A stretch of DNA of 64,000 nucleotides from Auanema rhodensis (taxonomy: Eukaryota > Animalia > Nematoda), in the NCBI GenBank assembly GCA_964057225.1, contig OZ059894.1:8432001-8496000 (forward strand), written 5' to 3'. The notes under the pieces are model-generated. The model did not search any database. It was given only the letters and a program-made list of their open reading frames with translations, and was not told the origin of the DNA. Both the position numbers and the translations under genes were made by a program. Shown here in pieces: positions 1,074 through 47,650 of the stretch. Within the stretch, counting starts at the first letter, position 1. Every line of letters begins with the position of its first letter.

Positions 1074-2014
1074 ATGACAACTAATCTTCGTTTATCCTTA
1101 TTCTTTTTACTGTTACCCGTATTTATACAAGGCAAAGGTTAGTAGTATTTGAATAGTTTGTAAGCTATCTTTTACTATTTCTCTTTATTTTATAGTTATT
1201 TCTTCCGTTGACCATTTTGTGGGAAAAACGAGCGTAGTTGAACCCGAATGGAAAAAAGTGAAAGCGATAGATGGACGATTTCTAACCGCAAGATTCATTC
1301 ATCAGAAGGATCAAGTCTTAGGTGATAGAGACTTTCCGGAACTAATAATTATATCCAGAACGAGGTCTAATCTCAATAAAATCTTTGTTAAAGTACTCTG
1401 TTATATTTTCTCTCGTCATAGCAATATTTAACTACAATTTCAGGCAAAGTCTTCCAAACATATTCTACAACGAAAAGAGCGTGACTCAAAGAATTTGAAA
1501 TCGGAGTCAGTTTTCAAGGAGATCTTACCTGGACATAGTAACAGTGGTTCCTTTTTGCGAACACGAGTCCTGCAGCACTGTCTTCCTAATAACTGTATTA
1601 AACAAATTTGAATTCAATTCAATCCCCTTTAATTTAGTAAGACACTCTGTTGATGCAAGCCATTTACCTGATGCACTGCTGTTGTACCCCACACGGAAAT
1701 ACTCACAACGATCTAAAATAGGTGAAACTTGAATCTGAGCGTAGACATACAAAAAACAATTTCACTTTTCCTGTGAATGCGACCGGTCAGCATGTCAATT
1801 GAATCAGAAATAAAATACTAACGTTCTAGTTCACGTAGTAATGCGTCACCGTATTGGCATGATCAAAGCAACAAAACAATATAGAATTTTCCAAGATAAT
1901 ACTGTTTTTAAATTTATTTTGTTTTCAGCCTTTGATCCTGTCTTGCCGATTCTTCGAAGCTCAAGATCTTCTGTGTTACCGTTTGGGACAAGCAAAACTG
2001 ATAATAATGTTTGA
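1074..2014 (+). CDS. Unknown putative secreted protein, 5 exons
   Basis: ATG 1074 gives signal-like MTTNLRLSLFFLLLPVFIQG. Exons ~1074-1137, 1197-1392, 1444-1595, 1638-1721 and 1929-2014 join in frame with GT-AG introns. AATAAA follows the stop. No recognisable domain. Confidence 0.55.
1775..1848 (-). repeat. Dispersed bipartite element copy inside intron 1722-1928
   Basis: Reverse complement reads TGACGCATTACTACGTGAAC...TGCTGACCGGTCGCATTC, with a 46-nt spacer. Confidence 0.65.
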
Positions 2015-2183
2015 TGCAATAAATATATTTTTTTAAAATAAATAAGCACTGAATAATAATCGTGATATTTTGGGAAAATCTAAAATCTCTAGGTGATAAA
2101 TGATTAATTGCTTGCTTTCTCGAATTAAATTCCCATAAAACCCGTTGTACCATCACTTAGTTTGAGAATCTTGACTTTTGACT

Positions 2184-2640
2184 ATGAATTTCCTAACCAT
2201 ATTTATCACTATAATACTTTTTACTACGGTTTACGCACGTTTTCTGGGATGCCTACCTGAGAGAAGAAATTATAAACTGTATTACCCTTGCCAAGAAGGG
2301 TACTCAGGTTTTTTTTTCAAATTCATAGAACTTAGCAATGTGTTTGAACATAGAAGAAGAAGATCGAACAGAATCTCTACTCAGAGGTGAGCCTACAAGA
2401 TTTGCTAGAACAGGTTTCTATGACCGTTTATTCAGGTAATATTGAAAAGTTATACCTTATTAACGGTTTAATATAATATTTTTCTTTGTAACATATATTT
2501 TCGATATATTTTACAGAAACGCTAACACAATACAATGGATGGGACAATACGCGTATTATCCAACTTATGGCTTTAATGCAAATCTACCAGAAGGTGTATA
2601 CAGATATAGTAACTTCTTTACAAAACCTGTAGAAACATAA
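2184..2640 (+). CDS. Small secreted protein (~110 aa) containing an FLP-2-like LRGEPTRF segment
   Basis: Three in-frame exons (2184-~2308, 2354-2435, 2517-2640): MNFLTIFITIILFTTVYA-RFLGCLPERRNYKLYYPCQEGYSEEEDRTESLLRGEPTRFARTGFYDRLFRNANTIQWMGQYAYYPTYGFNANLPEGVYRYSNFFTKPVET*. AATAAA at ~2717. Confidence 0.75.
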
Positions 2641-43222: not shown

Positions 43223-46200
43223 CGTGTATATACTAATATATATTTCTGAAAAATCGAAAAACTCTTTTATTTCGAAAAATAAATCGTTTGATTTTATGAT
43301 TATGTAATAAAATCTTTGTTTATATCTAGATATTTATCATCTTTTTTTAGTTAATGTGATATGTATCTCATTTCTTATTAAATCCTTCTGAGCTAATATA
43401 TAGAATAAGGTTGTTGTAAGCTATATTAGAAACATCTGGCCACATCGCTTCCTTCTAATCAGATCAACTACAAAGCTATTCATCCTTTATGTTTAGTTAT
43501 TTTCCCAGGCCATCATAACCTAGCCATATTGGACTGTAGCAAAACTTCTGGTGCAGAAGAAAGATCACCACTTGGTGATGCCACCCGTTAACCTTATAAC
43601 ACAACATACATAACTATAACATCCTGAGTTCTGTTTTATTGGAAAATAATATGACAATGTATAATATATACGATTATTTGTAGATACAAACCCATTTCAT
43701 TAATCCTTATGTTATTCTTTTGAGCTCTTTTTCTAATTATTCAATTGATTCAACATCTGTTTTACCTACTTTTTCATCTCATAAATTGCATCCAACCCTA
43801 CTGATCGATATCCACTTAAGAATCATCATTCAATTTTGCTCAAAATTCCGTTGTACATTTCTTCTTCTCAATCCAAACCTCAATTTTCATATTGTAGTTA
43901 TATTTCATGATGTATTATATTCAAATATTAAACTATTTTCAAAAAGATTATCGTTTTTCGGTGTTTAAATTACTTCATTTATCTCCTGGTCATTCTGTTT
44001 TCAAAGTTCATCATCGTTTTTGCAGAGGAGACAAATGGCATATTAACCTTTACCTTCTTGGGTCAGGTAAACGTGAATGTCTCCAAGATCGTTACAGATG
44101 ATAAACTGAGATTTCGAATTATGGAACTCTTATCTATGTTCACAAAAAATTTTTCTTCCAAAAACATATTCAAATTTAGTTTTGGAAGAAATCGGCAAAT
44201 TAGATGCCGATTTCATTTTTAGAACCAGAATCGTTCCATTTTTTATTTTTTTAATGTAATTCTCATTTGACTATCGTATTCAAAACCAACAATACAGATT
44301 ATTATCTTTATTCATTTTCGTCATCTTTCTTAAAATTTTGTGGATTACGTTCATTACCTACGCTTGTCGAGGAGACTTCCTATTCTTACAAGACATTTTT
44401 TCTTAGCGACCTTCCATTCCAGCAGTTACTCGCAGGTGTCAAGCCTACTTCTGAATAATTACAGAGCAGGAAGTCTGGTCATTCTGTTTTTTTCCTTTGA
44501 ATGTCTTCCCAGATGAAGAAAGAAAACAGATGCATATCGGACATTTCTAAAACATTGTCCATATCTCTCGTTCTCTTTTTGGCTTTTAATCGTCTTCTTC
44601 CTTTGACGTCGTGAAATCTTCTTTTGTATTTTTTCGCACATTGTTGCGTAAACTGCCCTTTTTTGTCTTTTTATATCTATAAATAAGTAAATATGTATGT
44701 CTATAACTGAAGAGAAAAATCTGATTATATTTCTTTCATTTGAAAGACCTTCCGAAGAGCTTATTTCCTTTTCAATAAGTCTGAATGAAACTTCGTGAAA
44801 GCAAAGTCCTCTATCTTATTTCTTTCATTTCATTCATTCAATTCAACCAAAATTTTCGCAGACTAATAACAGTTTTTACGACATTTTACCTTTATTAATT
44901 ACATAATATACTTATTACATGTTCTACATTTGTTCTAGCTAAAAGACAAAATGAATATGCAAATACTCCCGGAAGTTCAAAATCTGGTCTTCTTTTGTCA
45001 TTCTTCTTTTCTGACAAAACAAGACAATTGAATGATGAATGCTGTAGAGCCTCTGTCTTCTTCTTCGTCTTCACGTCGTAATCCATTATCTCCTCACATT
45101 TGTACAATGTAAATGATTCAATTTATGATATGAATGCTAAAAAATGAAAAAGAATTCAATTTTTTAGAGAAATTTTAAAAATAATTTCATTTTCAATTAT
45201 AAGGCACATTGTTCTTTCCTTAAATTCATGAAATAATTTAGAATCGTAATGATAAAGTCTCTCAGGTTACGAATTCAAAAATGTTGATATGGAATATCAT
45301 TTAGATTAAAACCATCATTTTTATCTTTTTTTATTATTTTCACATTCATATTAATGTGTAACCAAAGCCAATATTATATTCATATACTATATGTACTTAT
45401 TGATATATTTTGACAGCTTCTATACAATCTCTATCAGAATGCTATAAGCTTTTGTATTCAATTGAGTATTATCATAATGTTGCCTACATACATACATATA
45501 TTCTAAGTTCAATTATTTCAATGTTATTGCGACCTTACCTATTTTCATCGATTATAAGATTTCTCATCATTGTCTTTTTATTTTCTTTCATTTTTATATT
45601 TTTATATTTTTGAACGTTCACATAGTGATTCTTTATCCTGATAACATAAAAAATATCTGTTATTGGATCATTAAGAACAAAACTTACAGAAAAAAATAAA
45701 GAAAAAGTAGTTTATATCTCAGAATTTGCGTCTTTTTTTTAGCTTTCTCTTTATTGTTTCTATCAAGTTTGTCCAATTTGTTCAAGATCCCCACTCTCCT
45801 TTTTCAGAAAGGAGAGTTGAAGTATTGGTTGTGAATGCATAATCGTTACCTGTTATTTGATTACGAATTTTTTCCCTCAAACTGTTTCAAAAAGGAATTT
45901 GTAAAAAAAAATTCGAAATACCAAAAGACCTGGCCAACGTGGCTGGACATCTGTGCGTTTCAGTAGTGGTGATGATACTGGTGGTACCATCATCATCGTT
46001 CAGACCAGCAGCTGCATCACACATCACAACTATTATGAATTTTGTCCTTCAGCAATATGCATGTCTGTATCATGTAAATCCTACATGAATAAGAATTGAT
46101 ATATAAGTTTATTCCATGAATCTCACCAGACAAGCGACGTGTCATACCGTGTTTTAATGATTCTTGTAAGACTAAAACATACAGGAGTTGCTGAATTTTT

Positions 46201-47580
46201 TTTATTTGCTTCCCAATGTAAAGTATGTTGTAACGTGATTGTCTGATACGTTTGGATGTATGAGCTATCTGAGTAATCAAGACAACATGCACATACGACG
46301 AATCATTCAAACAACAATACAATATATGAGCATCTGGAAAGCTTTATGAATATTCGTATGAAAAACATGAGTATGTACTGAATTAAGAAAAAAAAAGTTT
46401 TGAAAAAAGACTATAGAAAGTGAGGTGCTAAGGTAACAAGAAACATCTGGTTCAAACCCAAGAAAGTATACGGTAGTTTTGCTTATCTCTATCCAGCTGT
46501 TCATTTTTGTGTTGAGTTTTACAGTAATATTAGTATTAAATATTCATATTTCTTAAATTTGAACTCTGATTCACAATTGAATGTCTCTAATAAAAGAATT
46601 GCGTAGTTGAGGAAGATCGAAAACTATACTCTACAGTACTCCAATCGTCGGCTCATCGATATGACTGTCGTTACCTTCATGACCCCACGTGTCAGTTCCT
46701 GTCTAGCAATAACATGACTCCTAGTTATGAGTACCTGCCCTAAGACCGCTTTCACGCCATTGTTTATCTTCGGTCATTTTCTACACTAAGGTTTACTTTT
46801 GCTTATTTACCGATTGTCGGTTAAGACATATGCTTCTGGTACTTTTTAGTCGCGTTCATGACCGAAGGTTCCATTTCTTGACTTCCGTTTGAAATAGAAA
46901 TCAGAAAAATATATTTCATATCAAAGAGAAAGAAAAGAAACAACGCCGAACTATCTAATATCGACGATGAATAGACAAAATATCAACAAGCATACTCACT
47001 TGTCTCTTTCTTAAAAGCGGTATCTTATTGTCTTTTTATGAAAGCCGTATCTAATCCATGCTACATACATGTCATCTGGAGATAAAGAGAGATTGAAGCA
47101 GTTGGCTCTGTTTACTTAGGAACAGTTGCCTTATAGAAATGTAAATTTCAATCTACATGTTATCTATACAATCATAAAGAAGTTGTTCAAACTCTCTGTA
47201 GCATCATCTCATCAGAAAGCATAGAAGCTTGTCATTTCTTCACAAATTCCAGCTGTCAATCTCCGTTTTACAGAGATGTGATTTGAAGCGTGCTACGAGG
47301 GCAGATGTCTTTGGACTTACATCCAGCTCTATTATTCTCACTCTATCGCAATGTGGACAGCGAAGATGATGTCGATACAGAAAAAACGATTGAGTTAAGG
47401 ACATCTTCAGAGAAAAACCTGATATACAGTTTGAATAATGATTGACATCCTGACAATCTGTCCAACTAATAATTGACAATATTATTACTTGGTTTTTAAA
47501 TTTAACAAATTTCCAGCACACGTTAGGTTTAAATTTTTTCTTAAAGTTTATTAACCGTATAAATTATTTGAACCACTACT

Positions 47581-47650
47581 TTAGCAACCGTTCATCATCA
47601 TTGCTCCAAGTAAAAATAACACACATTGTTCACGTGACGCGTTCACGTAT
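47581..47650 (-). repeat. Dispersed bipartite element copy
   Basis: Reverse complement reads TACGTGAACGCGTCACGTGAAC...TGATGAACGGTTGCTAA, with a 40-nt spacer. Confidence 0.7.

Follow-up and report, generated by a model that had tools for sequence, protein, structure and literature searches.

The window analysed here is a 64-kb stretch of the Auanema rhodensis genome (contig OZ059894.1, positions 8,432,001 to 8,496,000), which contains genes for an eRF3-like protein, a LYR-motif protein, a kinase, an SLC17-like MFS transporter, a collagen, a Delta-like ligand and a myosin. Its non-coding DNA holds nine copies of a 17-bp sequence, tGAyGAnCGGTTGCATT (the core), which stand clear of background, while coding sequence holds none of the nine. 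All the copies listed in the first-pass annotation are where it placed them, within 1–2 nt (Table 1). The description of the motif is based on these nine copies in one window.

Table 1. The nine copies of the core, the sites that accompany them and their surroundings (positions in the window).
Copy	Span	Strand	Core and accompanying sites	Placement
c1785	1776..1850	-	core TGCTGACCGGTCGCATT at 1776-1792; minus-strand TACGTG 1832-1837, AACGTT 1820-1825, GTGACGCA further 5'	antisense in the ~205-nt last intron (1722-1926) of a + strand gene
c5891	5882..5988	-	core TGACGAGCGGTTGCATT at 5882-5898; GCGTGGCGTGACG adjoins core; octamers 5' at 5953-5960, 5981-5988	antisense in the 3'UTR of the + strand LYR-motif gene; ~200 nt past the 3' end of the convergent kinase gene
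c15929	15895..15938	+	CACGTG 15895-15900; core TGATGAGCGGTTGCATT at 15922-15938	sense in the 159-nt intron (15826-15984) of the SLC17-like MFS transporter gene
c23788	23736..23797	+	TGACGT 23736; TCACGTGA 23745-23752; octamer ATTTGCAT 23756-23763; core TGATGACCGGTTGCATT 23781-23797	gene-poor, AT-rich surroundings
c27970	27961..28032	-	core AGAGAACGGTTGCGTT 27961-27977; minus-strand TTACGTCA, TCACGTCA (+ strand TGACGT at 28015, 28027)	
c31024	30952..31033	+	core TGAAGATCGGTTGACTC 31017-31033; CCAAT; five ACGT boxes: CACGTG 30952, ACGTCA 30961, TACGTA 30968, CACGTG 30978, TACGTG 31013	TTTTTTTAG acceptor 46 nt downstream; ATG of a signal-peptide-like first exon 56 nt downstream
c39925	39873..39934	+	TGACGTCA 39873-39880; core AAAGATCGGTTGTTCG 39918-39934 (weakest copy, 17.5 bits)	
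c43213	43156..43222	+	TCACGTGG 43156-43163; core TAAAGTGCGGTTGCATT 43206-43222	~260 nt 3' of a same-strand serpentine-receptor-like gene (read by eye from ORFs; no Pfam hit)
c47590	47581..47649	-	core TGATGAACGGTTGCTAA 47581-47597; minus-strand TCACGTGAA (47631-47636 on +), ACGCGT, ATACGTGAA (47644-47649 on +); further 5', minus-strand CACGCG	3.4 kb from the Delta-like ligand gene, pointing away

In the window, CGGTTGCATT is observed 4 times for an expected 0.12, and none of 100 shuffles reaches 4; the 17-mer with at most 2 mismatches is also found 4 times (0.05 expected), and GANCGGTTGC with at most 1 mismatch 13 times (3.5 expected). A position weight matrix gives the nine copies 17.5 to 28.5 bits and every other site in the window but one 12.4 bits or less, a separation that is partly circular since the matrix was built from the copies themselves. 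The exception, at 60664 (19.1 bits), lies antisense within a myosin exon and reads CGGTTT; we take it as a chance match. The element is apparently restricted to the lineage of its host, judging from ~153 kb of DNA from seven other nematodes, from which the 17-mer is absent.

The core is accompanied on its 5' side by sites with an ACGT centre. An E-box/CRE-type site (CACGTG, TACGTG, TGACGT or ACGTCA) is present at −75 to −20 in 8 of the 9 copies, compared to 3.9% of random positions (p = 5e-11), and on the 3' side in one of nine, which is not significant. With these sites, the copies answer to the description of an E-box/CRE-containing regulatory module, in which CACGTG, TGACGTCA or ACGTCA cluster within ~100 bp. 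TCACGTG and CACGTG are the sole k-mers enriched in the flanks after correction; CACGTG is present in five copies (p = 6e-7), at 15895, 23746, 30978, 43157 and 47631, exactly as first reported. The earlier observation that an ACGT box lies upstream of every copy but that at 5881 is also borne out: the boxes are on the 5' side only, and the main ones have their ACGT centre 31–60 nt away from the core C. The remaining copy, c5891, has two perfect octamers in place of the box. Octamers accompany or replace the ACGT sites in two modules. Upstream of a constant core there may thus be an E-box, a CRE or an octamer. At five loci the ACGT sites form pairs 8–13 nt apart. The spacing between box and core is not exact to the base pair. 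This fits two sites whose positions are both set by a shared open region or start site better than it fits a rigid dimer.

The spacers and flanks share no similarity, as the first-pass annotation had noted for the spacer. In MAFFT alignments and all-against-all blastn comparisons, only the 12–18 nt of the core are in register between copies, and comparison of the window with itself reveals no self-matches, repeated segments or terminal inverted repeats. We therefore rejected a MITE or Helitron family, in agreement with the initial view that the copies are not simple transposon fragments. It could still be argued that they are what decay has left of an ancient mobile element (a MITE, a Helitron end or a solo terminal repeat), now without function: a 17-bp sequence is hard to make many times by point mutation, and co-opted MITE promoters of Caenorhabditis retain only their two motifs (PMC9757741). 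However, no pair has an alignable flank, the window has neither terminal inverted repeats nor repeated segments, the two convergent pairs of copies, 4.2–4.4 kb apart, have no internal similarity, the upstream boxes differ in spacing and type, and a neutral relic would lose its core as quickly as its flanks. We consider this origin very improbable.

Three copies lie within expressed genes, one sense in an intron, one antisense in an intron and one antisense in a 3'UTR; the other six are in gene-poor, AT-rich DNA. The two intronic copies occupy the sole two enlarged introns identified in the window, one copy in each. These introns, for which 207 and 160 nt had been claimed, are real: the length of the first (~205 nt) is deduced from RNA-contig depth arithmetic and GT..AG ends, that of the second (159 nt) from the open reading frame and splice sites. 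The usual intron size, based on 15 RNA-verified introns, is 40–52 nt. In both cases the distance from the core C to the intron edge is 55–63 nt.

As first suggested from the lack of any fixed relation to an ATG, the copies are not coupled to the starts of coding genes. According to a crude gene finder, the coding chains within 600 nt downstream of the copies have a median length of 153 nt, against 174 nt at random positions, and those on the opposite side are no longer than at random positions either. None of the known 5' ends in the window (the eRF3-like gene at 3004 and the LYR, kinase, SLC17, collagen and Delta genes) has a copy. A plausible gene start lies just downstream of only one of the nine copies (c31024), and RNA contigs put two others inside or antisense to other genes. 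These results speak against a core promoter element of protein-coding genes. It is important to note that the gene models are crude between 17 and 50 kb, where some copies may be promoters of unseen genes.

A variant of the promoter hypothesis is that the 17-mer is a core-promoter element of coding, trans-spliced genes, at or just upstream of start sites that are masked by trans-splicing, internal or alternative intronic promoters being included. The layout is promoter-like, with activator sites that precede a fixed, oriented element by ~45 nt. SL1 trans-splicing is active, with a loose end CCAAGTTTG at 3004, c31024 is followed by an acceptor after 46 nt and by a signal-peptide-like ATG exon after 56 nt, and TTCAA occurs 18–32 nt downstream of five of the nine cores. 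On the other hand, the TTCAA signal is not significant after multiple-test correction, the DNA into which c5891 points is occupied for more than 5 kb by + strand genes, c1785 lies within an intron that is spliced out, antisense to its gene, and the downstream coding chains and the known 5' ends also speak against it. We find this variant improbable.

The independence from genes could also mean that the copies work at the level of the chromosome, as an insulator or loop anchor, a holocentromere seed, a replication origin or a pairing motif; the target of its factor would then be chromatin instead of a gene nearby. In favor of such a role are the length and high information content of the motif and its fairly even density, with intervals of 3–10 kb between copies. 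However, the window has no copy between 47.6 and 64 kb, and in nematodes no bipartite oriented site of this type is known to serve any of these functions. We regard a role of this sort as quite improbable.

Regarding the products of the copies, three sets of long-RNA contigs contain no stable long RNA that would belong to either of two copies. Searched against Rfam, the window gives no match at the gathering score, and the surroundings of the copies give none even with E values up to 5. The 90 nt downstream of the copies are unstructured (z from −1.45 to +1.14), and no column or k-mer is conserved downstream of the core, a comparison that has no power with nine copies in DNA of 68% AT. The Rfam searches speak against a PSE of the snRNA type, which would lie ~45–65 nt upstream of an snRNA, SL RNA or similar gene; the window contains no snRNA gene. 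A C/D box snoRNA was rejected: four copies have AAAGA or AGAGA in place of TGATGA, a CTGA comes after a single copy, and there is neither a fold nor an Rfam hit.

The proposal of a Ruby-like piRNA promoter, made in the first-pass annotation, is not supported by the sequence. The placement in introns in either orientation, seen for two of the nine copies, is compatible with it. On the other hand, the core CGGTTGCA contains no GTTTC, the defining part of the Ruby motif, the canonical Ruby core CTGTTTCA is not enriched in the window (5 observed for 4.3 expected), and among the nine copies the downstream DNA has no conserved column. We agree with its authors that the ACGT box is foreign to Ruby. 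The match to the Ruby core at 6 of 8 positions is slightly more meaningful than it appears, since both cores fit CNGTTnCA, with a Myb-type CNGTT; judged on the letters, it is a resemblance.

The copies may nevertheless be promoters of autonomous small-RNA mini-genes (piRNA-like, SNAPc-type), the 17-mer being the Ruby/SNAPc motif of this lineage; Pol II would then start, some tens of nt beyond it, a short precursor with a cap. The octamers upstream of two copies are consistent with this, octamers being an upstream feature of vertebrate snRNA promoters. The host belongs to clade V, the nematode clade that retains Piwi, the distance from the core C to the intron edge leaves space for a short unit, and two copies are without long stable RNA. 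The shared fit to CNGTTnCA points the same way, as the Ruby motif derives from the SNAPc motif (PMC6436959), and so do the intron and 3'UTR placements in both orientations: the P-type piRNA loci of Pristionchus lie in introns of active genes, in both orientations (PMC6436959). At Ruby loci, to which SNPC-4/PRDE-1 bind, a YRNT initiator provides the 5' T of the 21U-RNA ~40 nt downstream of the core, and the capped precursor measures ~28 nt. Against this reading are the missing GTTTC and, within the limited power of nine copies, the absence of a YRNT or T column at a fixed distance; moreover, E-box/CRE boxes are not known from any described piRNA promoter. We think it unlikely. A specific version is that the 17-mer has replaced Ruby in this lineage: boosted by E-box/CRE activators, it would be the SNAPc/Myb-type promoter that drives piRNA-like short capped RNAs from P-type mini-genes, dispersed by the thousand. 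This is unlikely too; if true, it could explain how piRNAs are produced in a nematode of clade V whose genome is not enriched in canonical Ruby. Such a case is reported for Heterorhabditis bacteriophora, with no motif upstream of its 21U reads (PMC6436959), where one of 17 bp could hardly have been overlooked.

The explanation that we favor, and to which we give even chances, is a composite cis-regulatory module, oriented and specific to the lineage, which measures ~60–110 bp and has two putative protein-binding sites. The 5' part would consist of one to five ACGT-core sites (yCACGTGAA, TGACGTCA, TTACGTCA), often paired 8–13 bp apart, such as bHLH-ZIP, bZIP or SAND/GMEB-type activators recognise. 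A single sequence-specific factor would recognise the 3' part, the 17-bp site, which is 31–60 bp off, always on the same side, and whose invariant CGGTTG agrees with the Myb-type CNGTTR. Together, the two factors may hold open a small nucleosome-free regulatory site. Its action, that of an enhancer or of an orphan type of promoter, would not depend on the host gene, and short unstable transcripts might run from box to core. Selection for such a module would account for introns 3–5 times the usual length in a genome that trims its introns to 40–52 nt. Two protein-binding sites under a spacing constraint had been proposed from the start; the element indeed looks like two such sites, with a fixed polarity and a spacing window that is loose. 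Some observations count against the module. Polarity as strict as this is expected of promoters more than of enhancers, but a plausible gene start accompanies a single copy; two copies show no stable RNA of their own; and few ordinary transcription-factor sites would be as rich in information as a 17-bp sequence that occurs about once every 7 kb.

The 5' part of the element is made of sequences that are precisely those of known sites: the E-box (CACGTG; bHLH-ZIP proteins of the USF/TFE/Max type), the CRE (TGACGTCA; bZIP) and the flexibly spaced ACGT pairs of the SAND-domain proteins GMEB/PIF, which tolerate pair spacings in the range of 8–13 bp. Those sites are general, whereas here they are coupled one-sidedly to a fixed 17-mer, an arrangement of which our literature search found no description.

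Like Ruby, the motif of nematode type I 21U-RNA genes, and its parent, the SNAPc-bound PSE of snRNA genes (PMC6436959), the core is a short oriented motif with dispersed copies, which in the case of Ruby are very many; the core and Ruby both fit CNGTTnCA. It differs from Ruby in having GGTTGC instead of GTTTC, in being a GC-rich block of 17 bp and in its coupling to E-box/CRE sites, and from the PSE in that no snRNA or other Rfam RNA lies downstream. UM1 and UM2, the upstream motifs of independently transcribed intronic ncRNA genes of C. elegans (PMC1474057), precede structured RNAs (snRNA, snoRNA), unlike the unstructured, Rfam-negative 90 nt found here; they are similar in that they lie in introns of host genes, independently of which they act.

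Last, the m1-m2 pairs of Caenorhabditis germline promoters are bound by HIM-17 and number in the thousands, with many located away from annotated promoters (PMC9757741). Their spacing is tight (10–30 bp) and they come from CERP2/CELE2 MITEs, whereas the spacing here is loose (31–60 bp) and there is no detectable transposon context. Both systems nevertheless consist of motif pairs that have a preferred order and orientation and that are, in our case apparently, restricted to one lineage.

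The first-pass annotation had listed nine copies of the element in the window, whose DNA is AT-rich (32% GC), and all nine are indeed present. The consensus of the core is tGAyGAnCGGTTGCATT, in which CGGTTG is unchanged in eight copies; the string CAACCGCT is the reverse complement of the core string AGCGGTTG. The window contains four matches to CGGTTGCATT where 0.12 are expected, four matches to the 17-mer with at most two mismatches (0.05 expected), and 13 matches to GANCGGTTGC with at most one mismatch (3.5 expected). When the window is scanned with a position weight matrix (PWM), the nine copies score 17.5–28.5 bits and all remaining sites but one score 12.4 bits or less, a separation that is partly circular since the matrix was derived from the same nine copies, a sample taken from one window. 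The lone other strong site (60655–60676, + strand, 19.1 bits, TGGTGAAGTTCGGTTTCCTTCC) carries CGGTTT, has no ACGT box and lies antisense within a myosin heavy-chain exon; we treat it as a chance match. A literature search with the motif string matched primers only.

The second part of the element, the ACGT box, is real and one-sided. A site of the E-box or CRE type (CACGTG, TACGTG, TGACGT or ACGTCA) is found 20–75 nt upstream of the core in eight of the nine copies, compared to 3.9% of random positions (p = 5e-11), and on the 3' side in one of nine, which agrees with the earlier claim that a box precedes every copy except 5891 (copies are named by the position of their core). In a blind k-mer test, TCACGTG, CACGTG and ACGTGAA alone are enriched on the upstream side, and no k-mer is enriched on the downstream side. 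The boxes read yCACGTGAA, TGACGTCAA or TTACGTCAT, their polarity towards the core is constant, and the distance from the centre of the main box to the core is 31–60 nt. The duplication of the box that had been noticed earlier is seen in five modules, which have at least two ACGT sites 8–13 nt apart. Copy 5891, which lacks the ACGT box, is preceded by two perfect octamers at most 100 nt upstream; a further octamer, the third among the modules, lies upstream of copy 23788, and there are only eight octamers in the entire window.

That the copies are not fragments of a simple transposon, as proposed from the outset, is borne out by their flanks, which fail to align when the copies are compared with 100 nt on either side. 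In an all-against-all blastn search with 300 nt on either side, the core alone matches, in register; compared with itself, the window shows no internal repeat, nor are the stretches of 4.2–4.4 kb enclosed by the two convergent pairs of copies related to each other. Regarding RNA genes, no Rfam model matches the window at its gathering score, none matches near any copy at E values up to 5, and a tRNA scan of the window found none. From +20 to +110, the 90 nt that follow each copy fold no better than shuffled sequences. The TGATGA string brings C/D snoRNAs to mind, but it is poorly kept as a C box and there is no D box; the likeness to a tRNA B-box or an RFX X-box was rejected by reading, the invariant positions being different. 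Separately, a near-perfect AT-rich palindromic hairpin at 29712–29790 matches the mir-1277 and mir-297 models on both strands; it is probably just a palindrome, since its 27–28 bits are far under the gathering scores of 81–90.

The position of the copies relative to genes was assessed using RNA contigs from three runs bearing the same species label, which cover 701–6700, are strandless and do not include small RNAs; outside 700–6700, the gene models are based on open reading frames and splice consensus only.

Genes and exons located in the window
Feature	Position	Strand	Evidence or remark
Unnamed gene (operon-like group)	~900–2020	+	
Low-expressed gene, exons	1194–1392, 1444–1594	+	RNA contigs
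Same low-expressed gene, 82-nt exon	ends near 1719–1721	+	contig depth arithmetic
Same low-expressed gene, 94-nt last exon	~1927–2020	+	contig depth arithmetic
Small secreted protein (operon-like group)	2110–2838	+	
eRF3/HBS1-like gene	3004–5402	+	RNA contigs; 13 introns of 40–52 nt
LYR-motif gene	transcript to about 6066–6115	+	RNA contigs
CDKL-like kinase gene, convergent with the LYR-motif gene	end ~6096	-	RNA contigs
Two-exon cuticle collagen gene	33739–34784	-	

The gap between the 82-nt and 94-nt exons of the low-expressed gene starts with GTGAAAC and ends with TTTTCAG. From these splice ends and the depth arithmetic, we infer an intron of about 205 nt within which copy 1785 lies antisense. 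Contig depth inside it stays close to zero in each of the three RNA runs, therefore copy 1785 yields no stable long RNA. An SLC17-like transporter hosts copy 15929 on its sense strand, within a 159-nt intron that separates ...SVTTTG from LLVSATAAIHAPIK.... The two host introns had been described as enlarged (207 and 160 nt against about 45 nt); with about 205 and 159 nt against 40–52 nt they are so, and they are the sole enlarged introns documented in the window. According to the gene layout given by the RNA contigs, copy 5891 is antisense in the 3'UTR of the LYR-motif gene, with over 5 kb of + strand genes ahead of it. At 5655–6290, the LYR-motif and kinase transcripts either meet end to end or share about 20 nt (6066–6115), and the assembler merged both into single contigs.

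Some features of this region concern the genes themselves. Three + strand genes 90–170 nt apart, the third of them the eRF3/HBS1-like gene, form an operon-like group (900–5402). The contig depth of the eRF3/HBS1-like gene is 10–60 times that of its neighbours, which suggests that it probably has its own promoter, and an mRNA contig bears an SL1 end (CCAAGTTTG) at the acceptor at 3004. At 3–575 (- strand), an exon coding for a ShK domain is preceded by an in-frame run of about 20 asparagine codons (an AAT/AAC repeat); no expression was seen in the three RNA runs.

Downstream of copy 31024 come the acceptor TTTTTTTAG, at 46 nt, and a signal-peptide-like ATG, at 56 nt, while the five copies other than 1785, 5891, 15929 and 31024 lie at 19–33 kb and 35–50 kb, in AT-rich DNA where few or no genes were found. 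These long stretches (19000–33500 and 35000–50500), which hold six of the nine modules, contain few detectable multi-exon genes, if any, and lack internal repeats altogether; they are unusual beside the tightly packed genes at 1–17 kb. A Pfam search with ten open reading frames near the copies gave no match. The earlier statement that the copies have no fixed relation to any ATG is supported by the coding chains found up to 600 nt downstream, the median of which is 153 nt, against 174 nt at 400 random positions; on the opposite side the median is 144 nt, likewise no excess over the 400 random positions. The exon-chain finder is crude, though it recovered the known genes of the window, so that this lack of coupling to gene starts is evidence rather than proof. 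No recognisable gene 5' end in the window carries a copy.

Could the copies be promoters of small RNAs, as the first-pass annotation proposed? Ruby, the promoter motif of type I 21U-RNA (piRNA) genes, comes from the SNAPc motif, and P-type piRNA loci are placed within the introns of active genes, sense or antisense (PMC6436959). With two intronic copies, one sense and one antisense, the placement of the element recalls that of P-type loci, and the cores of the element and of Ruby both match CNGTTnCA. However, GTTTC is absent from the core of the element, canonical Ruby is not enriched in the window, the coupling to E-box/CRE-type sites is foreign to piRNA promoters, and no initiator column is apparent downstream of the core among the nine copies: TTCAA occurs at +18 to +32 in five of the nine copies, with an uncorrected p of 0.001 that is not significant over 1024 5-mers. 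We consider it unlikely that the copies are Ruby-like or P-type-like small-RNA units. If the species' own snRNA, SL1 and SmY genes shared a block of the CGGTTGCA type 45 to 65 nt upstream, the dispersed copies would be SNAPc-type promoters. The piRNA reading, if true, would be relevant to the loss of Ruby reported for a Piwi-bearing clade V nematode: in Heterorhabditis bacteriophora, Piwi is present and no motif is found upstream of 21U reads (PMC6436959).

The element is probably lineage-restricted. No site of 17.5 bits or more was found in about 153 kb of DNA around collagen genes of seven other nematodes (Haemonchus contortus, Ancylostoma caninum, Mesorhabditis spiculigera, Pristionchus mayeri, Caenorhabditis auriculariae, Nippostrongylus brasiliensis and Steinernema hermaphroditum), where about 20 are predicted at the density of the window. 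The cuticle collagen of the window has its best matches among strongylids (68–69% identity to Haemonchus and Ancylostoma collagens, about 50% to other clades), and a collection of 5.8 billion proteins contains none identical to it.

We give an even chance to the idea that the element is a composite regulatory module that works autonomously, as an open site of the enhancer or orphan-promoter type. It consists of a constant, oriented, information-rich site with variable, loosely spaced activator-type sites on one side; its putative readers would be ACGT-binding activators and one further factor at the core, whose site includes CNGTTR, the Myb-type consensus.

If the density seen here, roughly one copy in every 7 kb, held genome-wide, the element would be among the commonest specific sequence signals of the genome. 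Its copies would then represent a large class of regulatory sites with a lineage-specific factor or, alternatively, autonomous mini transcription units of a new kind; both readings give a handle on how regulatory sites are placed inside introns and UTRs in compact, trans-splicing nematode genomes. The modules occupy introns, sense or antisense to the host gene, as well as a 3'UTR and gene deserts, and stable RNA is absent at two copies, a pattern that ordinary protein-coding promoters would not show. It is this placement, combined with a promoter-like architecture, that leads us to think of an autonomous module: in its architecture, the module resembles promoters and some composite regulatory elements.
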